Origin: Dicyema japonicum
Lineage: Eukaryota; Animalia; Dicyemida
Length of the DNA stretch: 64,000 nucleotides
Direction of reading: 5' to 3'
Assembly: GCA_011109175.1 (NCBI GenBank)
Contig: RDEW01000022.1
Coordinates: forward strand, 477,834-541,833
Both the position numbers and the translations under genes were made by a program. Every line of letters starts with the position of its first letter. Position 1 is the stretch's first letter. The notes beneath the pieces were generated by a model, which saw only the letters and a program-made list of their open reading frames with translations, ran no database searches and was not told the DNA's origin. Positions 9,016-49,668 of the stretch are shown here, one piece after another.

Positions 9016-10578
9016 TGCCTGTCGTTAGAAAAGCTACTACAAAGAAGAATACTAAAATCAAAAAGACTAACTCTGGAAAGGTCTTAAAGGAGAATTATAT
9101 TGAAAACGATGAGACTACCTCTGGAGGGGTTTTAAAGAATAGCTGTATTGAAATGTTAAGGATCTGTCTCTGAGCCTCTTTTGAATACTCTGGGAATGCT
9201 TTTATACGAATCACTGTTATGTCAAATATGGGAGCCATCAAAATCTCCAACTTACTGTACTCGTTCGACCCGACAGGGTCTATCAGATTGAGCACAAAGG
9301 CTCCGGCATCTTCCGCCTCGAATTCACGAAGGAGGAGGATAAAAGGAACTTTTGTGAACATGTGAATGCCACTTCACCTTTTTGGTCTTGGAAACCATTG
9401 TTTCAGTGAAATCCGAGTGAAACCGTCCGAAATTGTGTTGAAGAACTTGCCATTTTGGGTTGATGATAACGACCTTCATGAATTTGTCAAGAAATTAGCT
9501 TCCTCTACTACGAGCATATGCCGTTTCTACAAGGGAGATAGGAGACTCCCTCTTGCAAAAGTTCTAGTTGGATCAAGGGCGGAGGCTACATCGCTTGTCC
9601 GTCTTGGTTTCAACATTGCCCACGTGCCAATTACATGTGAATGGTACAGAAGAGGCCCACCTATATGTTTCAATGCCAACGCTATGGACACATATCCTCC
9701 TTCTGTATGTCTCCGTTGTGCAGGGGAACACGACTTGACTGCTTGTGGAGAGACTCCTAAGAACACAATGAATTGTATAAATTGTGGCTCGTCCTCACAC
9801 TGTGCAGATATGGTGGATGCCCAGCCGCCAAGAAATCTGATCGGAAGAAAGCAACTAAAGGCGATGGACAGTCGATAATAAACGATATTGGGAGAACGTG
9901 GACAGCAAAGACAGTTATGTCAAAGTCGGCACCTAAAATTCGTCGAAAACCAAACGATGTCTCACCCAATCTATCAGAGAAGATACACGCTGAAATATCG
10001 GAGATTATGTCGCGGTTAAACTATTTGTGCTCGATTGCACATGTGGATTTAATGGAAACGGTGACCTTGACTTTGAAGAAGCAAGGTCACCCAAATGTTT
10101 GAAGCAAGGACTAAAAATAGTGCTAGTGAATGCCCGATCCCTAGGGAAAAGTCATAATGAACTAGCACTACTTGCGAGGGCCTCCAAGATAGACATCTTG
10201 GTGGTCAATGAGACGAAATTAAAGAAAGCGAAGAGTAATATAATGACTGGATATAATTCTGTAGACATTTTATGGAAGGCTGAAGCAGTTGCTGGTACGG
10301 GAACGTCTATTTTCTACCGGGACTGCCTCCGAATTCGTAATCCAAAAGTCGTTTGTGATGTATTGTGTGAATTTGTAAGCATGGACGTTTGTTGCGACGG
10401 AGTATGGATTAGTGTTGGAGGTCTATACTCCAAGAATCTTGAGACTTGTTCTACAGATATCACTGAGTTCTACAACAAGAATCCCTATACTATCTTAATT
10501 GGGGATCTTAATTCTAAGAACACTAGTTATGGTTGTAGCAAGACAAATCAGGATGGACGACGTTTAGAATTATTGTCT
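9016..10578 (+). mobile_element. Jockey/I-group LINE: gag-like ORF1 with CCHC knuckles plus APE start, 3'-truncated
   Basis: ORF1 has KPSEIVLKNLPFWVDDNDL, CLRCAGEHDLTAC and CINCGSSSH; APE has IVLVNARSL, VVNETKLK and LIGDLNSK. A paralogous element lies at 61900-63170. Confidence 0.8.
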
Positions 10579-10579
10579 G

Positions 10580-12345
10580 TGCGTCATGTGGTTCACCGTT
10601 TCTGGTGGCGTCGGATAATAATAATAATAATAATAAAGCCTTTTCACGAGAGCCATAGTATTTTATAGCTCCGCATAGGCAGGACACACACTTTATTTAA
10701 GTAAAGAACAGTTAATTTTAACTAATCGTAGAACCAAGGAATGATCTTCACTTCTTTTTTTTCTTTTTCTTGTGTGAGTGTCCTTTCTAGACAAATCCAG
10801 TTCCGCAGTGAGTATTCACTGATGACGGCGTCACTCGTCAAACCATTTCTGCATCGTAGATGCGTGGAACCTTCCACCAGGTGAACAGCAGCGAGATTCG
10901 AACCCGTAGCCTAAGCCACTTAAGCCCGACACCTAACCACTAAGCCACCCGGTGGCGTCGGATATAGTCCTAAACTATATCTAAAAAGAACCATTTGCTC
11001 TCTACCAACCAGAGGACTTCCCACTGGACGGCATTCTCTCACTGTTGGAACATTCTATCGATTGAGACTGTTGACCTCAGGAGACGTGGAACAAAACCCA
11101 GGCCCAAAGAAGTTAACAATCCAAAACTAAACATAAACGGGATCAGAGGAAAGATTGCCGAACTTTCCTTATTCTTGGAGAGGAACAGAGTGGACATCTG
11201 CCTTCTCCAGGATACGAAACTTTCAAATAACATTCCTACTCCTCTCTTTAACGGATACAACACAGTAAGATCCGACCACCCATCTGGCCAAGGAGAGGGT
11301 CTACTGACTCTTGTGAGAAAAGGAATAAAATACCTCGAGAACCCTTCTCTTTACAAGAGCTTAATGGAAGACTCGAACACGGAGATAATTGGAATCTCTG
11401 TTATAACTTCCATTGGAAAAATTGAAATTGCGAATGTTTATGTTCCTCCTCCTGGCTCCTGCAAGAAAAATTTCTCCTTTGACCTATCTACCTTGGACAA
11501 CTAGAGAACTTGCTTTTATGTGGAGACCTGAATGCGAAACACCCTTCTTGGTTCCGCTACCAGTCCGCTGATAACAGAGGAAACCTGCTATTATCCCAAA
11601 TGCAAAACTTAATAATCATCAACAACCCGAAAAAGAACACTAGGACACCATACAACACGAAGGACATGGTGACATCTCCGGACTAATCCGTCTGCTCACC
11701 TCGTCTTTTCCCGATCATTAATTGGACGGTCCGTTATGACCTCCGGAGCGACCACCATTCAATGTTAATGAAGCTGAACTGCGAGCTACGCTTTGTACCG
11801 AAGCCTATTCATTTCTATGATTACAAAAATGCAAATTGGACTGGCTTTACAAATTTCGTTGATTCAAAACTGCAACATTTCCAACCTGAAAATTTCTTCT
11901 CCATAGACAAAGCTGTATACTATTTCAACAAAACAATCATTGACGGGAGAAATATTTTTATCAGAAAAGCATATATAAAAAACGAAAAATTGAAATACGA
12001 CTCAAAAACAAGAAAATAATTATGGAAACAACCTTAAGAGAATGATACATCGTTCACGAGAGGTTATTAATCGAATCAGGTCACTAAACATTCTTATCAC
12101 GAAAAGCACAAACAACACCCAAAAGAAGAAACTCATGCGAATCTCTGCTGCCATGAATAATCAAGATTGTGGAGGATCGGATCAATGGTTTCAGGAGGAG
12201 ATCAAAGGTCCAGGACACATATATAAAGCTGGGGGAATAAAGATTAAAAAGCTGGGAGAAACGTTCCGAAAAAGATTTATAATAAAAAAAAGGAGGAAGG
12301 GTCCAGGTGTGGAGTCCAAGCCTTATGGTAGGACTCAGATGTAAT
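10580..12345 (+). mobile_element. Ingi-like LINE, copy 1: 5' HDV-like fold, 2A motif, APE; interrupted by a SINE
   Basis: RLRLLTSGDVEQNPGP at 11059-11106, then APE (LNINGIRGK, LLQDTKLS, NVYVPP, GDLNAKH, LRSDHH). Several stops and frameshifts. Confidence 0.75.
10618..10950 (-). mobile_element. Full-length tRNA-derived SINE (333 bp)
   Basis: A box TGGCTTAGTGGT (10936-10947), B box GGTTCGAATCT (10894-10904), (TTA)n tail, and a 14-bp TSD ggtggcgtcggata at 10604-10617 and 10951-10964. Confidence 0.9.
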
Positions 12346-24300: not shown

Positions 24301-26070
24301 TTGATTTGAATCATCGGAAATATCGCCTTCTGTTATTGTCTCATTAAGTGACTTTTCCACAGCATGTCTAATAAATCAAACGTCCTTACAAATCAGAAAA
24401 TCGCTGAATCTGATAACCTGGAGTTTCCGAGCATCATCTATTAAATGACGGACCTAAATAAATTATAATCAATCAACACCTCATCGTCCTCAATATTAAC
24501 ACAAGATTCGGAAGAATCACGTATTTTCTCAACTCTGCTACATTAGTTATCCCCTACTTTAGAAAAGCAACTTCCTTTAATAATCCACTAATTATTTTCC
24601 GAGAATTAGTATCATGCTCTCCCTCACAAGCTACAGCTCAACACATCAACCACCATTCAAATATTCTTGCAATTTTATGTTCTCCTTTTCATTTTTTATA
24701 TCCTCAATGTTTTGAACAAGTCTTTCATTCTCCATCTTGACATTCTCTAACTCCTCCTCCAATTCCTTCATACGGATTTCGTTACCCCCACACTTATTCT
24801 GTGGTAAATCAACGTAATACAATATTTAGTTCTCTCTTAAGCTCTAATAACTGATCTCTTAAGGAAGCAATCTCTTGCATCTTCAAGTCCTGATTCACCA
24901 CAGCCTTGTTTTCAATATTCTTGGCTCTATTTGCATACTCCAAGGTTCCTGATGTCTCCGCCCAATCTGTCATAGCGGGAGACACACAGGCCAACATAAG
25001 AGTACGACTATTCCCACCCAAAGAATCCTGCAAAATTCGAGTCAACTTCGAGTCTCTGTAAGGCACATAAATTCCATTCCTGGATTTTTCAGCCAAAGCA
25101 GAGATTACATTGCCCAGAGCGAACTGAATAGTCATGAATGATCTACCAGGCCGTAGTTTATACAAATCCCTCTTTAGCACGGTTCCCTGTGGCACCGGTC
25201 CGCTTCAATCGTTCAGACCCAGCCAAGTCCACAAAGTTAAGTTTAGATGTTAGGACTTGCTTGAAATTGCTGCTTCCGTCTTGTACGGGCCTCTCCTGCT
25301 TTATTATTAGAGAGAATATTGCATGAGATCTGGATGACTTTTCATTCATATTGGTGCTCCCGGTAGTCCTTAGAAGGCAACCACCTTTGAGCAGGTCAGT
25401 TACCTACTTTTCAAAAATTTATCCGACCTCCTTAATGCTGCCGACGATTTTAGTAGTTGTCCCCATCAAATATATTCCTCCCTGAATGTCCTCGTGGATC
25501 TTTATTTGCTTCTTGTACCCAGAGTCCAATAGATCGTTTATATCCTCATTGTACAGCTGTTATAATAATTGTCACATACCTCAACAAACTGAATCGATAC
25601 TTGATATGAGATATCTTGTCCCTTCTCAATTTCTGCGTACAAATGACTTAATGCACGTGGGATTATTCCTACAAGATCTTCGGAGAGTTCGAGATCGAAT
25701 GATGATCCCATTGAGTAGGTTTTGCCAGACCCGGTCTAGACGTTAAAAAATCGTCAACTTGACCGTAAGCAATCACAGTAGCATTGTAACCACCGAAGGA
25801 ACTATGTAAACTAAAATCAGTACCCTTCTATCAGATTATGGACAACTTGGTCGTAGATTTCTATCTGTTTAGAGTTTGTGTCAAACACGTGGTCGAATGT
25901 GTAAAACTTATTACCTCCTATCATGACCTGTGAGGTTTCCTTTAATACTTCGACATATAACGGACATTGAGATTCCAATTCAGTTTTGTTTAATGGTCTT
26001 ACTCTGATATATAGTAAATACATTCTTACCTAACTGCCACTTTAACGTTAGTATTGTCTTTCCTGCTCAT
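21352..26070 (-). CDS. KIF21: Kinesin-4 family motor with coiled coil and C-terminal WD40 repeats (KIF21-like)
   Basis: [14 protein letters not shown]|VRPL; P-loop YGQ|TGSGKT reconstructed across introns 25802-25823 (22 nt) and 25736-25758 (23 nt). Also [15 protein letters not shown] and [19 protein letters not shown], a long coiled coil and WD-like repeats (VNVWD, VFVWD, VHLWN). Confidence 0.85.
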
Positions 26071-26462: not shown

Positions 26463-27039
26463 TCATAAATTATGTCATTAACATCAATTTCGTGATTATT
26501 TAATCAAAAATTTTGTCATTATTATTTTAGAGAATAATCTAATATATAGGATTTCAGTCATCTTTGATTTGTTTTCTTCTATTTTCTTCTAACGATTAAT
26601 ATCTCTTGTGGGGATTTACACTATTAAAAACTACGCTCAAGACTGAATTCATTTTACCAAACAATCATTCTTATAATGTATGATGAGTGAGAATATTTTG
26701 AGTATCTGCGAAAGAAGGGACATCAAAGTAGCTCTTACTAAAAGAATCCCAAATATAGAGTGGTGAACCCTCACTCTAATAATTTTAATAAAAAAATATT
26801 AATTATAACAAATTGCCAAGTTGTTGTTTTGTTTTGTTCATCTATTTTGTTCCTCTTTGTGTTTTTTAGCTCCAGGGAGATTGAATTGTTAGATTACGTC
26901 ATTTGGTTCACCAAAAAATTTAAAATTAAACTCTATCCTATTTTATTTTTTGTATTTTCTTGTTTAATAAACACAGTTTTTTGGAATTTCATGCCAGTTT
27001 TCATGCGTGTGGTGGCATCGCTCACTTGAAGTGTTGGAA

Positions 27040-29395
27040 AAGATATTACAAATCAATGGTATCCGAACAAAAATTGCCGAACTACAACGCTTTCTCATAC
27101 AAACATTCAGTGGATACAGCTCTTTTCCAAGAGACGAAATTAACCCACGGCGACCAACCCCCAACTTTCTGGGATACTCCTTATTCAGACGAGACAGAGG
27201 TCATGGAAAAGTAGGAAGCCTTATTATACTAATCAGGAAGTATATAATGGTCAGAAATATCTCGGATGACATCCTGGACCCCTCCCCCCAAGACGACACA
27301 CTGGAACAACTAACTCTGAGAATATGCCTACCCTTTCTTCGGTTGATAGTTGTCAATATGTCCATTCCCCCTCCACCGTCATGCCCAAGCGGCTACAGCA
27401 CCGAACTCAAGCGATTCACAGGTTGGAAAACACGCTAATTGGCGGTGACCTAAATGCGAAGAGTTCTCAATGGTATGCTGACCAACAAGTGGATCAACGG
27501 GGAACCCTCATATCTGACAGTTTTGACGACTTGGTCATTCTCAATAATCCTAGCAAACACACAAGGACCCCTTCCTGTCGAGGCGACTCCCTTAATCACC
27601 CGACATTTCTTTTGCCACTCTTTCTCTTGCGGCTGTCATTTCATGGTATGTTATATATGACTTACATACTGACCATAAACCCGATCTTCATGAGGATCCT
27701 ACAAAAATATAAGTTAATGAACACTCCGAGAACCAATGTGAACTTCTCAAAAGCAATATGACCTTCACATATTTCATCGAACTACACCATCAGGCTATCA
27801 GGATAAAGAACTTTGGATCTATCGACGCTGCTGTCAAATATTTCAACGAGATTATACTCCGAGCTCGCAAAAAATACATTCCGATGGGTCGTCCTCTAAG
27901 CTGAATAATTTCGAAAGACAATCAGTGGATGTAACTGAAGGGATATAACTGAACAAAGAAATCACGCGGAACATCACAAAACACAACAAAGAACGTTGGG
28001 AAGCCTTGATCAGAAAAGCTACAAACAATACTTTCCCCATTGTATTATGGAAATCGATAAGGAGACTCAAGATGTGCTCTCCACTTTTAATTGGACATCG
28101 AGAGCCATATCCAAATTCCAATGACATTATGAAGTACAATGTGAATATTAGTCATAAACCATATTCAAAAGACCTGGATGTTCGTTCTGCCAATAATCGA
28201 AGAAATGACTTTCTTCGACCTTTAATGGTGCACTCAGTAATCAGGAAAATGAATAACTCGTCGTCCCGCGGTTCAGATGACATCTCTATTCTCGAACTGG
28301 AACACCTGGGTTCTTCCGCGACGGCCGCAATAACACAAATTTTCAACTTCTCAATAAACGAGAACAAGTGGATGTAGAGAAGGCTTTTGACTCAGTATCC
28401 CGGAAGATCCTTACAGAAAAAATTTTTACGACATCGATCCACCCTAAATTCAAATCATAGTTGGTTAACTTCATCAACGGTCGAATAAGCCAAGTGGTGG
28501 CAAAATCAAAACCGCTATACCCTCCGAATGGAGTTCCACAAAAATCCCCGTTGTCACCAATTCTCTTCAACATGTTCATCAGTGACCTCCAATCCCCAAC
28601 TACCAAAAACACAATTCTTTTATCGCATGCGGATGATCTCGTGATTGCAGTGGAACATCGAAGAATCGAGGATGCGACACGGTACGTGCAAGATCTACTA
28701 AACCTGATGGGTCTTCAGTTCCTGAAGAACCGTCTAAATATATCACCAGGAAAGTCACATGTAATGAAGTTCACCGCAGCGTGAAAGAAATACGGGCAAC
28801 ATCACGAATAAAATTGTATGACATCCCGCTTCCTATTAAGAAGACCCTTTCAATCCTTGGAGTCATCCTGGATCCCCTCCTCACATTTAATCATCAAATG
28901 GACCTAATAACCGCGAGGATCCAAAAAATTGGAATTCTCAAGGCTTCCACTAACTCTCCAATATCTTCCCTCCCATTGTTAGAACTTCTATACAAACAAT
29001 TCGTTTACAGAGATCGAGTACGCCTGTGCTGCATGGATTGCCCCGTTATCACTATCGGCACAGAGCAAGCTGGAAGTTTTACAAAATTGATGTCTTAGAA
29101 TAATACTGAAAGTGTCTAAAAAGACGTCCACTTCGTTACTACGGAAAACACTAAACGTCCCCCAATCATGGAATATTTTACGGAACGTCACCGGGACTTC
29201 CTCAAAATGGCAAAGTCCCCTGATCATCCCTTCGGGCCGCACATCGGACTATATATGGACGCCTGCCCGAGATATGAGAAGAAGCCTTCCCGGCTGTAGA
29301 GATTGATCCAGGACTCCAAAACTAACTGCCGGAAAAGGACTGGTATAGACACCAGGATCACATAATTAGAGGATAACTTTTATCCTTTTTTTCGT
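27040..29395 (+). mobile_element. Ingi-like LINE (APE plus RT, degenerate, 5' end missing)
   Basis: INGIRTKIAEL, LFQETKL, GGDLNAK, DVEKAFDS, GVPQKSPLSPILFN, HADD and LGVILDPLLTF; taataaaataaataata tail. Confidence 0.78.
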
Positions 29396-30295: not shown

Positions 30296-30468
30296 ACTCC
30301 AGTGGTTTCCAACCTAAAGGTCTTTGCGGAACTTTTTTATTTTTTGCGATACCCTTCCAATTCTATTATTACAATTTTCACTTAAAACATAATCGTAATA
30401 ACCAAAAACAAATTTAATGTAACTATTATCATAGTTGTGTTACGTTATGAGTAGGGCGATTTTTGTCA

Positions 30469-30783
30469 TAATAATAATAACAGCCTTTTTCACGGAGCCG
30501 TGGTATTAGCTCCGCATAGGCAGGACACACACTTTATTTAAGTAAAGAACAGTTAATTTTAACTAATCGTAGAACCAAGGAATGATCTTCACTTCTTTTT
30601 TTCTTTTTCTTGTGTGAGTGTCCTTTCTAGACAATCCAATTCCGCAGTGAGTATTCACTGATGACGGCGTCACTCGTCAAACCCTTTCCGCATCGTAGAT
30701 GCGTGGAACCTTCCACCAGGTGAACAGCAGCGAGATTCGAACCCGTAGCCTAAGCCACTTAAGCCCGACACCTAACCACTAAG
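30469..30783 (-). mobile_element. tRNA-derived SINE copy 2, missing its first few 5' nt, fused to a U2 fragment
   Basis: Near-identical to 10618-10950. An 18-bp TSD gtagggcgatttttgtca at 30451-30468 and 30816-30833 encloses SINE plus U2. Confidence 0.9.
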
Positions 30784-30819
30784 TCGCTTCTCGGCCTTTT
30801 GGCTAAGATCAAAGTGTAG
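30784..30819 (+). pseudogene. U2: U2 snRNA 5' fragment (about nt 2-37), retrocopy
   Basis: TCGCTTCTCGGCCTTTTGGCTAAGATCAAAGTGTAG matches the conserved U2 5' end up to the branch-site recognition sequence; no downstream U2 sequence. Confidence 0.92.
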
Positions 30820-31074
30820 GGCGATTTTTGTCAATAAAGTCAAAAATTCATATGTTCTTTAAAATTGTTTAAATTTTATAAAAATGTAGTTTTTAATCAA
30901 AAATATTATATTAATCGAAAGTTATAAAATCAAAAAGTCAAAATATTGGGTAATGTCAAAAAATCAAAATTTAATTTTTAAGGTCAATAAAGTCAAAAAT
31001 TTTATTGATTTTTATTTTTTAATTTTTCGAGTTTTTAAATAAAATACTAGCGTGGCGATTGTTTAATCCATCTA

Positions 31075-31170
31075 CGATTAGTTAAAATTAACTCTTTTTT
31101 ACTAAAAAAAAGTGTGTCCTGCCTATGCAGCTAATACTATGGCTCCGTAAAAATGTCTGTTATTATTATA
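31075..31170 (+). mobile_element. SINE 3'-end fragment
   Basis: tacgattagttaaaattaact...gtgtgtcctgcctatgcagctaatactatggctccgtaaaa...ttattatta. Confidence 0.8.
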
Positions 31171-32203
31171 GTAGGGTGGTATCAATTATTAGAAATATGT
31201 CAACACACTTATTGGTAGAATTTCTGATCCAAAGAAAATATTTTTAATATCTTGTCGTCCATTGTCTTCTGCGGCTAACTCGTCGACTGTCTGTCAGATA
31301 ATTGACGATGTGCTAAGGGATTTTGCGATAGATCGAGAGAATTTTGTATTACTGGTATCTGATGCAGCCAGATACATGGTGGCTGTTGCACAGGTATTGA
31401 AGGTTTTATACACGAATTTGGATAATGCAACATGTGTTCTTCATCTTCTTCATAACAGTTGCCGTAAAATAAGAGGATATTTTAAACTTGTGGATTTTTG
31501 AATTTCATCGATAAAGGCTGTCAAAAACAAGACACGAAGAGAAAATTTTGCTGAAATTGGGTATCCACCTCAAGTTATTCTAACAAGATTGGGAAGTTGG
31601 ATGGAAGCAGCTTGCTATTATTGCAAAAATTACACAGAAATAAAAAAATAATTGAAAGTTTCGATGGAGAGAGGATTTTAGTAGAAATATGTTCGCAAGC
31701 GGTTTGTCAAAACGAACCACGTACAAATTTATCATTAACATTATGCCAATATGACGATATGTGAAATAATTAAGGCAGAAGAAACCTATTTCACTATAGA
31801 AGACGCAGTTGAAGACATTAAGAAATTCCATTTTGGGGACGATTTATGTGGAATCGGGAAGTATTTAGAATCAAGATTATCTGTAAATCTAGTGTTTTCT
31901 ATTTCAAAAATGGAAAAGCAACATATTTCTCCATTTGTATACAACTGTCTTAATAAGTGTCCTTCCACATCTGTTGAGAGAAGTTTTTCTTTATTGAATA
32001 AATTATTTCTAAAGACCAAAATTTTAAACCCGAAAACGTTTCGAACTAAATTATTCTGTTTTTTAATAAAGATTTTAATTAGCTTTTTTTAATTAAAAAA
32101 TTTTTTTGTAGATAAATTTATCATAAAGTCAATTTTTCGCTTCGCTTCCTAAAGAAACTTAGACGCTTAGCTACACTAAAAAGCCACGACGCACGTGAGA
32201 CCC

Positions 32204-32289
32204 GGTGGCTACTCCAGTTGATCTCTGTTGCAATCGTGAGAGGCAACGCAACGTCGATAATGTCGGCGGGGTCCACTTTGGATGGATGG
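32204..32289 (+). repeat. ~85-bp dispersed structured repeat, copy B
   Basis: ggtggctactccagttgatctctgttgcaatcgtgagaggcaacgcaacgtcgataatgtcggcggggtccactttggatggatgg; homologous to 20334-20419. Confidence 0.8.
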
Positions 32290-32661
32290 CAGTTTTAAAT
32301 ATGATTTACTAGGGATAAATTAACTGATTATTTTTCTAAAATTGATTTATTTATAAAGTCAAAAAAATTGCCCTAGTTATGAGTTATTGTTGACAAATGT
32401 ATACTCATCAGCAGAACCATTGAATTTATTTCTATATTTTGTTTGATAGATTTATATATTGAAAACTCAGACTCGCATAAGTAAGTCGTTGTTAAAAGTA
32501 ATAGTGTACGTATTGCCTTTCCTGAGATATCAGGACATTTTGAGATATTCTTCCTAAACGGCGAAGCATGTAATGTTATTTTTATTTATAGATGACCGCG
32601 AAAATTCAATTTTCCGTTTTAAGGCCATTACTTTATCGTTCAAAATACAAACAGATTGATA

Positions 32662-46300: not shown

Positions 46301-49300
46301 TTATTATTATTTAAGCACTTCACGAGAGCCATACTAATTATAGCCCCGCATGTGCAGCAAAAGAAACAAGGTTAGATGTCATCCTTTTCCATGCTCCCCT
46401 GTTCCTAGCCAAGGCTCTCATGCTGTCCAGGTCGTCGGCATTTGTTAGATTTTTTTGATATTGACAAGGTCTTTTTGTAAGACTATTAGCAGTGTTGTTC
46501 TTGGTCTTCCACGATAGCGGCCTTCTTTACTAACATAGTATGTTTCCGTAGATATGTTCATTGGGGATGTTAATTCCATCCTCAACACGTGTCCGAAGAG
46601 CTTCCATCGGGATTCCAATACATCTAAGCTGATAGGTCTAGTGCAGCATCTCTTATATAAAGCATTTCTCGATATTCTCGTAGGACAAGTAGTTCCTGTT
46701 ATTTTTCTCAGCTGACCTCTGTGGAACGAGTCTAGTTTTTTCATATCCGCTGATGAGGTCGCCCAAGTTCCAGCGTTATATAAAAGTACGGGTTTTTTGA
46801 ATGAGTCGTATAATAAGATTCTCATTTTCGTATCGATACATCTTTGATTGAGCCATAAATTCTTCAGTTTATATAACGCAGCATTGGCTAGAGTTTTCCT
46901 ACGTAAAATATCTTCGCTATCTCCCATAAGTAAATCGAATTTCTTCACTTGTCGCTACTTCTCTTCTAGGACGTTACTCATCTTTCTTATCTCTGTGAGT
47001 TCTGTTTTCTCTCTGTTCACAGTAAGAAACCATTTCCCTAGTACATCTGCTGCTTTTTCTAATAAGTTTTCCAGGACCTCTTTGTCTTCAGAAATTAGGT
47101 CTACATCGTCCGCGTAGATCACTTCTTCCGTCTTTCCTTGGTATAACGGTCTAAGTTCCCTCATAGCGGCTTCCAAATAAATTGTGAATAGTAAAGGAGA
47201 CATGGAGTCTCCTTGTGGAGTGCCCGTGTTTGTTTCAAATTTTCTTGAATAGGTCATTCCGACTATCACAAGGAGCTCAGTATTGGAAAGTAAAATTCGG
47301 GTCATCCTTAAACTCGACCCATCAAGAAATCCGCTCAGTAACCCATTAATTTGTTCCTGTTAACCGCATCAAAAGCTCTTGATAGGTCAATTCCCAAATA
47401 TTGTTGGCGTTACGGTATCTTTGATATGTTGCACACCTCCATCTGTGACTCCAGACCGCATCAGCAGTGGATCTTCCTTCTCGAAAACCACTTTGACTAT
47501 CTGGTAGGTATTTGTAAGCAGATCCTTTTATTCGTTCAAGCACAATGTTTGCCAAGACTTTGCGTAATGAATTTAGTAGTATTATGGGTCGCAAATTTTC
47601 GATCGGTCCTCTGTTTTTGTTAGTTTTTTATATGAGGATTAGTAGTCCCGTACCCAGAGGTAGAGTTGAGTTAGTTGAAAACATTTCATTTAGTAGTGTA
47701 GCGATTTTTTCAAAAAAAAGGTCAGGGCCGTATTTCAGTAATTCTGGGTTTATCGCATCTGGTCTGGGACTTTTGTTATTCTTGAGTTTTCGGCAGGCCG
47801 TTTTGATTAGTATCTCAAAGGGTCTTGGCCTTCCATCAAATGGGTGGATTTCTATGGTTTTAATGTTGAAAAGCTTCTACAAAATGAGCCACGATGGCTT
47901 CAGTTTGTTCTTTGGTGTACAGTATCAGCTTGCCGTTCTTGTCTTTTATGGTTAGTCTACTTCGGTTTGTTCGCCGCAGCAAACGGGCAGCGACGTACAT
48001 TTGTGCGTTGTCTTTCATTATGTTTACCTCTTCTATAAAGGAAGCTATTTCTTCTAGGAAAAGCTTCTTGTTCAGACCCTTTATTTTTTTCATGACACGT
48101 TGCCTTTCACCCTGAAGGGATTTTATCGTATTAGCGTCAGTGACATTTGATTTTCTCATGTTTATTTCTTTTAAACTTTTCGCAAGCTCAGGAACATAGT
48201 TTGACAAGTGACGCCGTCATCAGTGGATACTCACTGCGAGACTGGATTTTCTAGAAAGGACCCACACATAAGAAAAAGAAATANATTTGATTTTCTCATG
48301 TTTATTTCTTTTAAACTTTTCGCAAGCTCAGGAACATGGTTTGACAAGTGACGCCGTCATCAGTGGATACTCACTGCGAGACTGGATTTTCTAGAAAGGA
48401 CCCACACATAAGAAAAAGAAATAAAGAAGTCAAGATCATTCCTTGGTTCTATTAGTTAACTGTTCTTTACTTAAATAAAATGTGTGTCCTTCCTATGCGG
48501 AGCTATAAATATTATGGCTCTCGTGAAAAGGCTTTTAAAAAAAAGCTCAGGAACATTTGGATGAATAGCCTTCAGGTGCATTTTACTATTCTCCCTTTTG
48601 CCAAGACATGCTTCAGCAGCTTCGTTGATGGTATCCTTTGTGCGTTTCCAGGTCGCATTCTAACGAGATATCCACCAATACGTCCTGCAAATGAGTCTGA
48701 ATGTATTGTTGATATTTCTCAGTAGTCTCCGGTTGGGAAATCAGCCTTTCAGTCGCCTCTGATTTTCTCAAAATTGTGATTTTTGGCATTTAATGGCATG
48801 TTTTTCAGGGTGAAGGTCGCAATAACCATCTTGTGGTCGCTGACAGTCGTCGAACCTCCATATGAACGTGCGTTTACTAGAAGGTGTTTGTCTTTAGCCC
48901 GGCATATGACATAATCGATTTGGTTGTATATTGAGACCAGCTTTCCTTCTGAGTTCCTTCGCTTCCCCATCCACGTAGTTTTGTGGCAGGATGCGTAAAT
49001 GCAGTATTGCATAGGAAAAGGTTGTTTGCCATACAAAAGTGACCAAGTATTGTCCCGGGTAGGTTTCTTATTCCACGTCCATGTTCTCCCAAGAAAACAT
49101 CAAAGAGTTATTCTTCATCCCAATTTTCGCATTCAAATCTTCAGCAATGAATATTAGTGATGACGACTCATATTCGTTGTACGTCCGTAACAGTGTTGAA
49201 TAGAAGTCGTCTAGTTCTGTCGGATCTTTCGCTACACTCCAGTATGGCACAAAAACATTTACAATTGTCAGAAAGCTCTTCGAAGAAGGTAAGTCGTTTA

Positions 49301-49668
49301 GACGGATTTGTATAACACAGATCCTGTCATTCACACTCAATAAACAGTGGACTGCACTTGTCAACTTTGAGTGGATGGCAAATCCAAGTCCATAATATTT
49401 TGAATCGCTCGGTTGACATATAATTCGATATTCACCATAGTTCTCATCAAGGCTACAAGTAACTTTCGTCTCTTGTAGGCACCCAATAGATACGTCGAAT
49501 CTCTCCAGGTCGTCACAGAGAATCTTCCTAGACCAGGTCGTAGATAAGCCTCTAGCATTGAACGTATGGACCTTTAGACGAGATGCATCTCTTTGTATCC
49601 CTTACCTTTTAAACATTTTTCTCAATTGCGATCCAATTAAGAAACGAGGCACTTCACCACCTCACCAC
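46301..49668 (-). mobile_element. Near full-length RTE-clade LINE, degenerate
   Basis: 5' motif gtggtgaggtggtga, APE (FNARG, EDLNAK, SDHKMV), RT (RPIILLN, QSGFREGRST, GTPQGDSMSPLLF, YADD), RTE C-terminus (RWKLFGHVLRM, GRPRTT) and (taa)n tail. Confidence 0.9.
48198..48542 (+). mobile_element. 5'-truncated SINE copy inserted in the RTE; includes an N-joined duplicated segment
   Basis: 14-bp TSD aagctcaggaacat at 48184-48197 and 48543-48556. The segment 48145-48283 is repeated after the N at 48284. Confidence 0.8.

Follow-up and report, generated by a model that had tools for sequence, protein, structure and literature searches.

A tRNA-derived SINE and a fragment of U2 snRNA lie head-to-head inside one 18-bp TSD in the genome of Dicyema japonicum, and we consider that both were probably placed there by a single TPRT event acting on two RNAs, that is, by twin priming in trans. 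One locus was examined, from assembly sequence, within a window of 64,000 nt (the whole stretch of DNA analyzed) on contig RDEW01000022.1. The insertion consists of the following parts.

30451-30468, no strand assigned: left copy of the 18-bp TSD GTAGGGCGATTTTTGTCA; its original context is the G of a hAT TSD followed by nt 1-17 of the hAT left TIR.
30469-30480, minus strand: microsatellite tail of the SINE, (TTA)4 in the SINE sense and (TAA)4 on the + strand; the putative start of the first-strand cDNA.
30469-30783, minus strand: tRNA-derived SINE from nt 7 to its end, with 95.7% identity to the full-length copy at 10618-10950.
30784-30819, plus strand: U2 snRNA nt 2-36 with one extra A (Rfam RF00004), comprising stem-loop I and the single-stranded stretch to GUAG.
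30816-30833, no strand assigned: right copy of the 18-bp TSD GTAGGGCGATTTTTGTCA; its first 4 nt, GTAG, are attributable to either the target or U2.

The two TSD copies matched at 18 of 18 positions in a direct-repeat comparison within the window, and the + strand between them reads, in order, (TAA)4, the antisense tRNA-SINE, and 36 nt of U2. SINE nt 7 on the - strand adjoins U2 nt 2 on the + strand at 30783/30784, and the RNA 5' ends of both partners meet at this inner junction. Inspection of the junction revealed no microhomology; it is blunt. At the other end of the U2 piece, GTAG (30816-30819) forms both the last 4 bases of U2 and the first 4 of the right TSD copy. Read in the SINE sense, the locus runs from the flank ...GAATTTTTGACTTTAT through the TSD TGACAAAAATCGCCCTAC and antisense U2 (nt 32 to nt 2) into SINE nt 7-end with (TTA)4, and then through the other TSD copy into TCATAAC.... 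A search of the window for GTAGGGCGATTTTTGTCA with up to 3 mismatches recovered the two TSD copies and one inverted relative, and no more, where 0.18 matches were expected by chance. This anatomy agrees with the preliminary description, which had placed a minus-strand SINE and an oppositely oriented U2 piece within one TSD, with the first few 5' nt of the SINE lost and GTAG common to the end of U2 and the right TSD copy: the perfect TSD encloses both parts, the overlap at 30816-30819 is real, and the loss amounts to exactly 6 nt (GGGTGG) relative to the full-length copy.

The site of insertion is the end of a DNA transposon, of which the following features were identified.

30444-30451, no strand assigned: left copy of the hAT 8-bp TSD GTTATGAG, the last G of which also begins the 18-bp retro-TSD.
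30452-32375, plus strand: remnant of the host hAT-type DNA transposon, with TIRs, 8-bp TSD, subterminal repeats, and a DUF659 remnant.
32376-32383, no strand assigned: right copy of the hAT 8-bp TSD GTTATGAG, an identical octamer located right after the right TIR.

An 8-bp TSD is the hallmark of hAT elements. The left TIR (TAGGGCGATTTTT) and the inverted right TIR (TAGGGCAATTTTT, 32359-32375) agree at 12 of 13 positions, with the consensus TAGGGC(G/A)ATTTTT, and the element also carries subterminal GTCAATAAAGTCAAAAA repeats. The DUF659 transposase remnant at 31193-31498 was detected with an E value of 3.9e-5 and 23.8 bits, which is under the curated cut-off of 34.7. Outside the element, on the minus strand at 32376-32585, lies a 70-aa piece that had been read as a hAT C-terminal remnant; it gave no Pfam match. 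The retro-TSD is composed of the last G of the hAT TSD and 17 nt of the left TIR, and its inverted relative in the window (TAGGGCAATTTTTTTGA, 32359-32375, minus strand) is the other end of the transposon. When the hAT TSD GTTATGAG is joined with the right TIR, G+TAGGGC(G/A)ATTTTT, the first 14 bases of the site, is rebuilt as a contiguous target; judged from the sequence, these 14 nt would amount to a partial empty site. The uninterrupted pre-insertion site would read GTTATGAG+TAGGGCGATTTTTGTCA+ATAAAG, without U2. The earlier proposal that the target was a hAT TIR is therefore borne out by the left and right TIRs and by GTTATGAG at both ends.

This target also bears on an assembly artefact, in which a SINE copy would have been falsely joined to a U2 gene. 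Both SINE and U2 are repeats, and an N-flanked tandem duplication is present elsewhere in the window (48284). The shares of sampled words recovered in public runs from the same organism, which ranged from 0.24 to 0.85, are not junction-specific and are possibly repeat-derived; for a second sample, X1, the equally non-junction-specific shares were 0.24 for an 801-bp stretch and 0.46 for the left junction stretch. A false join, however, would not be expected to start at mature U2 nt 2 and end after 36 nt, and it would leave unexplained both why 18 bp of the hAT TIR target are duplicated perfectly and why the hAT sequence downstream is correct. We therefore regard such an artefact as very unlikely.

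Comparison of 30784-30819 with the Rfam U2 model using Infernal gave an alignment to model positions 2-36 with zero mismatches and one inserted A (38.5 bits; E values of 5e-6 on 1 kb and 3.3e-4 on the whole window). The score is below the Rfam gathering score of 46 bits because only a fragment is present. In the whole-window Rfam scan (E≤1), this was the sole match of any family; hence, neither a U2 gene nor the 3' half of U2 lies nearby within the 64 kb. Such U2 3' sequence had been named beforehand as the sign of a real U2 gene. The end of the piece had been put at about nt 37; its start at nt 2 is confirmed, and its canonical end is nt 36, with 37 reached only by counting the extra A. A full-text literature search for the string containing this A (AUCAAAGUGUAG) gave no match. 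The piece begins with the 5' end of the mature RNA and has neither a promoter nor a 3' half. From the mature 5' start and the lack of any other U2 match in the window, we concluded that U2 entered as RNA, and the piece is RNA-derived. The cut lies inside GUAGUA, the branch-point recognition sequence, which is unpaired according to the Rfam consensus structure.

Insertion of the SINE into a genuine U2 gene or an older U2 pseudogene has nothing in its favor except the presence of U2 sequence, and its probability is negligible. A real U2 gene was rejected on the grounds that U2 lies inside the TSD, that hAT flank, and not U2, lies before the left TSD copy, and that GTAG continues into the hAT TIR instead of U2 nt 37 onward, no other U2 being present in the window. 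Two separate events were also considered, namely, insertion of the SINE with its 18-bp TSD and a later endonuclease-free insertion of U2 at the boundary with deletion of 6 SINE nt. Six SINE nt are missing at the junction, and L1 endonuclease-independent insertions without TSD are known (PMC1920257). The second hit, however, would need to fall exactly at the boundary, and the end of U2 would also need to match the TSD start over 4 nt. In addition, both parts look equally young, since the TSD is perfect and U2 is undiverged. This sequence of events seems quite improbable.

A BLAST search of the insertion against the window returned three related sequences: 10624-10944, with 95.7% identity to the focal SINE; a diverged, 5'-truncated SINE copy near 48199-48537; and a 100-nt tail-only match in the opposite orientation at 31071-31169. 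The first of these lies within the only full-length copy in the window.

10618-10950, minus strand: reference full-length SINE copy, without a U2 leader, flanked by a 14-bp TSD.

The TSD of this reference copy (GGTGGCGTCGGATA, 10604-10617 and 10951-10964) is exact over 14 bp and therefore fixes the SINE 5' end as GGGTGGCTTAGTGG.... The pol III A box TGGCTTAGTGG corresponds to SINE nt 4-14, and the B box GGTTCGAATCT is located downstream. The focal SINE begins at nt 7 (CTTAGTGG), and the lack of GGGTGG clips its A box, with the B box kept. As its A box is clipped, the focal copy is not likely to be a master copy, as far as its sequence indicates. Neither the SINE head nor the shared tail was found when metagenome contigs were scanned for exact patterns.

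These copies allow an inherited structure to be weighed, in which an antisense U2 leader was already present on the source SINE, as a subfamily feature or by 5' transduction, and was copied by read-through. The window offers a single full-length SINE for comparison, which leaves some room for this explanation. However, that copy (10618-10950) carries no U2 leader. Furthermore, the transcript start would have to equal the U2 cut point, which itself overlaps the new TSD by 4 nt, and antisense U2 provides no pol III promoter, while the A box is clipped. Inheritance of the leader is accordingly an unlikely explanation.

Twin priming in trans would account for the locus as follows; the order of the steps, and which end primed which RNA, are what we infer. 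The endonuclease would have nicked the + strand of the window after ...TTTTTGTCA (30468). The resulting + strand end, ...GTCA-3' (30468), would have primed on the (UUA)n tail of the SINE RNA, with the first-strand cDNA reaching SINE nt 7. A second cut 18 nt away on the other strand, between 30450 and 30451, would have left the 3' end ...CGCCCTAC. Instead of pairing with the first cDNA, this second-strand 3' end would have annealed through ...CTAC-3' by 4 nt to GUAG at U2 nt 33-36, and the RT would have extended it to U2 nt 2. The end of the U2 cDNA would then have been joined to the end of the SINE cDNA without microhomology, by a template jump or by end joining, yielding antisense U2 adjoining the SINE 5' end within a single TSD. 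The enzyme would probably have been that of an RTE-type LINE with the same tail as the SINE.

The minus-strand end predicted from the TSD, ...CTAC-3', is complementary to U2 nt 33-36, and extension of this end on U2 to the RNA 5' end gives exactly the antisense piece observed. The chance of a 4-nt GTAG/CTAC coincidence is about 0.3-0.4%. If GTAG is assigned to U2 alone, the TSD shortens to 14 bp and there is no primer overlap; we regard this as the less parsimonious reading. The lack of microhomology at the U2/SINE junction counts against twin priming in trans, and a template jump or blunt join is inferred there for that reason. Twin priming in trans had already been put forward in the preliminary description; its geometry fits all features tested, and the part that named RTE as the enzyme is only partly supported.

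The main rival is the microhomology-mediated capture of a preformed U2 cDNA. Here, a U2 5' cDNA or DNA fragment, such as a self-primed or abortive cDNA, would have been ligated as filler via the GTAG microhomology during repair, between the target end and the 5' end of the SINE cDNA, and the target 3' end would never have primed on U2 RNA. U2 nt 2 and SINE nt 7 meet in a blunt junction, an overlap of 4 nt is typical for microhomology-mediated joining, and the product would be indistinguishable in sequence from that of twin priming. On the other hand, capture requires that a U2 cDNA was available in free form with its end exactly inside the branch-point region. Random orientation would also be expected, so that the fit to twin priming would be partly luck, and published cases are consistently inverted and truncated in single-stranded loops (PMC4476161; PMC13174262). 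We judge this capture to be improbable, although less so than the other alternatives, and prefer twin priming in trans.

With regard to the enzyme, a sensitive search found no LINE/RTE body ending in the SINE's tail in the window; besides the three SINE copies, the shared tail is carried only by the fragment at 31071-31169, which belongs to the following feature.

31056-31167, plus strand: older tail-only retro-fragment of 112 nt, of which about 100 nt are 3' tail in common with the SINE, at 87% identity.

The upstream 15 nt of this fragment (31056-31070) are unlike the SINE, and a degenerate 11-bp TSD of its own, matching at 9 of 11 positions, borders it (TACTAGCGTGG / TAGTAGGGTGG; 31045-31055 and 31168-31178). 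The non-SINE upstream nucleotides, the degenerate TSD, and the identity of 87% together indicate a separate and older truncated element. It is probably a severely 5'-truncated copy of another element, and the partner LINE would be the likely candidate. The tail copy at 31071-31169 was rejected as a part of the focal event on the basis of its own degenerate TSD, its greater divergence (87% identity), and its location 237 bp outside the focal TSD.

In RTE-related SINEs and LINEs, the TSD begins with a T located roughly ten nt downstream of some five consecutive T, its first base correlates with the 3' microsatellite, and the usual TSD length in the RTE clade is 7-15 bp (Nishiyama & Ohshima 2018, PMC6007223). 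In the SINE sense, the focal insertion has the (TTA)4 tail, a TSD starting with T, and TTTTT at -13..-9. The tail-only fragment at 31056-31167 likewise has a T start and TTTTT at -13..-9, and the reference copy at 10618-10950 has a T start and TTT at -10..-8; the signature is absent from the old truncated SINE copy at 48338-48542. Across these four insertions in the window, the strict signature was found in 2, a partial one in 1, and none in 1, in a comparison made post hoc; as background, the signature occurs at 0.8-0.9% of positions across the window and at 1.4-2% of those within the hAT element. The focal TSD of 18 bp is above the RTE-clade range, or 14 bp long if GTAG is credited to U2, and the TSDs of the other copies are 14, 14, and 11 bp long. 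The site suggests that RTE-type machinery probably carried out the insertion. With respect to the earlier attribution to RTE, the site signature is indeed of RTE type, but the window contains no RTE body with the SINE tail, only the 112-nt fragment.

Inverted snRNA chimeras have been described for human L1. Doucet et al. (2015, PMC4476161) reported seven human chimeras of U5, U1, U2, and U6, termed 'Group IV' snRNA pseudogenes and including one U2/L1 case, in which a 3'-truncated snRNA is inverted relative to L1 or SVA within one TSD. Their cleavage sites match the L1 endonuclease when read in the orientation of L1 and in no other, the snRNA is complementary to the insertion site where it was cut, and the truncation falls in a functional loop that is single-stranded; a twin-priming model for inverted snRNA chimeras was already proposed there (PMC4476161). 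Law & Burns (2026, PMC13174262) described antisense 5S, tRNA-half, and U5-L1 chimeras and extended the twin-priming reading to them. The view in the preliminary description that twin priming mainly concerns a single RNA and that U6/L1 chimeras share one orientation is outdated by these two studies.

The locus in D. japonicum resembles the Doucet chimeras in having a single TSD, an inverted and 3'-truncated snRNA whose 5' end lies at the inner junction, a truncation within a functional loop that is single-stranded, a few nt common to the cut and the insertion site, and an endonuclease site that is sensible only in the retroposon orientation. The sequence-level features of that class were found here, the pre-insertion site being rebuilt for its first 14 bases, and the locus would be assigned to it on this basis. 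It differs in its partner, a tRNA-SINE with a (TTA)n tail in place of L1 or SVA with poly(A); in its site, which is of RTE type (T start and a T-run about 10 nt upstream) and not TT/AAAA; and in its host, which is non-mammalian, as the TE content, with RTE, CRE-clade, and Ingi-like elements, also suggests. The locus is also similar to the chimeras of Law & Burns (2026), in which the 5' fragment of a small structured RNA is antisense to the retroposon, begins with nt 1 at the junction, and terminates at a loop, and which are likewise read as twin priming at the opposite end of the TPRT break; their catalogue, however, covers mammalian L1 only, whereas U2 is combined with a SINE here.

Classical 5' inversion of L1 (Ostertag & Kazazian 2001, PMC311219) likewise involves priming of RT by the second-strand 3' end through short microhomology and the joining of two cDNAs within one TSD, but both primers act on the same L1 RNA, whereas the second primer here would have used an unrelated RNA. 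U6/L1 chimeras formed by template switching or RtcB ligation (Buzdin 2002/2003; Garcia-Perez 2007; PMC6789731) are also co-inserted within one TSD. In those, the full-length U6 3' end joins L1 in the same orientation, in contrast to the head-to-head arrangement here; for the present locus, template switching and RNA ligation as in U6/L1 were rejected, since they yield same-orientation chimeras and never head-to-head ones. In SINEU families (Kojima 2015, PMC4494074), U2 is located on the 5' side of the SINE as it is here, but the snRNA head (U1 or U2) is sense and family-wide. The U2 piece described here is antisense and single copy, the tRNA A box beside it is clipped, and the other full-length SINE has no U2.

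The mechanism itself is known, and what is apparently new is a SINE partner with a microsatellite tail, a probable RTE-type machinery, and a non-mammalian host. Catalogues of inverted snRNA/retroposon chimeras have to date covered mammalian L1 only, and our literature search for such chimeras in clades other than L1 found no report. One locus is an instructive footprint rather than the discovery of a principle, and it yields a concrete genome-wide test: snRNA 5' fragments beside SINE or RTE 5' ends can be sought and their orientation and TSD overlap recorded. It is conceivable, though we are doubtful, that RTE-type (ORF1-less) TPRT in this genome regularly gives rise to second-strand priming on bystander nuclear RNA, with a preference for the single-stranded U2 branch-point region. 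If so, the genome would hold independent inverted U2/SINE and U2/RTE chimeras, all ending within GUAGUA, and twin priming in trans would be general to APE-type retrotransposition and not a peculiarity of L1. A clean example would imply that a free second-strand end recruits any accessible RNA during TPRT in any LINE clade, that neither an ORF1 protein nor a poly(A) tail is needed, and that the process works with a passenger as the primary template, so that neither of the two RNAs encodes the enzyme.

The hAT-type DNA transposon remnant whose left TIR was the target of the SINE/U2 insertion is listed below with the sequences that flank it.

24812-26029, minus strand: exons of a kinesin motor-domain gene
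26971-29300, plus strand: decayed non-LTR retrotransposon (Exo_endo_phos_2, 27270-27758; RVT_1, 28461-28781)
30452-32375: hAT-type remnant, with 13-nt TIRs and the 8-bp TSD GTTATGAG
32376-32585, minus strand: 70-aa stop-free piece (…TTYLCESEFS…) just past the right end of the hAT

The hAT-type element contained subterminal GTCAATAAAGTCAAAAA repeats together with the remnant of a DUF659 transposase, and it carried two separate retro-insertions. The 70-aa piece gave no Pfam match and looks like a C-terminal remnant of a hAT transposase. Because this hAT-like piece adjoins its right end, the element seems to be nested in another hAT. The decayed non-LTR retrotransposon lay directly upstream of the hAT. 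Apart from the kinesin gene, no clear host gene was seen in the vicinity of the SINE/U2 chimera.

Two other copies of the SINE were located.

10604-10964: full-length SINE copy with its 14-bp TSD
within 48144-48556, plus strand: older SINE copy, 5'-truncated, with the 14-bp TSD AAGCTCAGGAACAT
46958-47359 (RT) and 49071-49601 (APE remnant), minus strand: LINE enclosing the older copy

The full-length copy broke the reading frame of a plus-strand LINE, leaving stop-free segments at 9994-10665 and 10974-11501. The older copy had an A-rich tail, not TTA, and was contained in a tandem duplication of approximately 140 bp. Since the TSD motif occurred three times at 48144-48556 and an N was found at 48284, this duplicated arrangement could have arisen as an artefact of assembly or scaffolding.

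A further fragment shared the SINE tail, and a short hairpin was identified near the end of this tail.

31056-31167, plus strand: tail-only retro-fragment, with putative TSDs at 31045-31055 and 31168-31178
30489-30501, 10641-10656 and 31139-31150: hairpin in the focal SINE (the copy joined to U2), full-length SINE and tail-only fragment, respectively

Approximately 100 nt were common to the fragment and the SINE tail, and the 15 nt upstream were unlike the SINE. Its 11-bp TSD was degenerate, and its site showed the same T-run/T-start signature as the focal insertion. The hairpin covaried among copies, with CACGG..CCGTG in the focal SINE versus TATGG..CCGTA in the tail-only fragment. This fragment probably represents a copy of the partner LINE (the presumed RTE-type element with the same tail) that was truncated at its 5' end.
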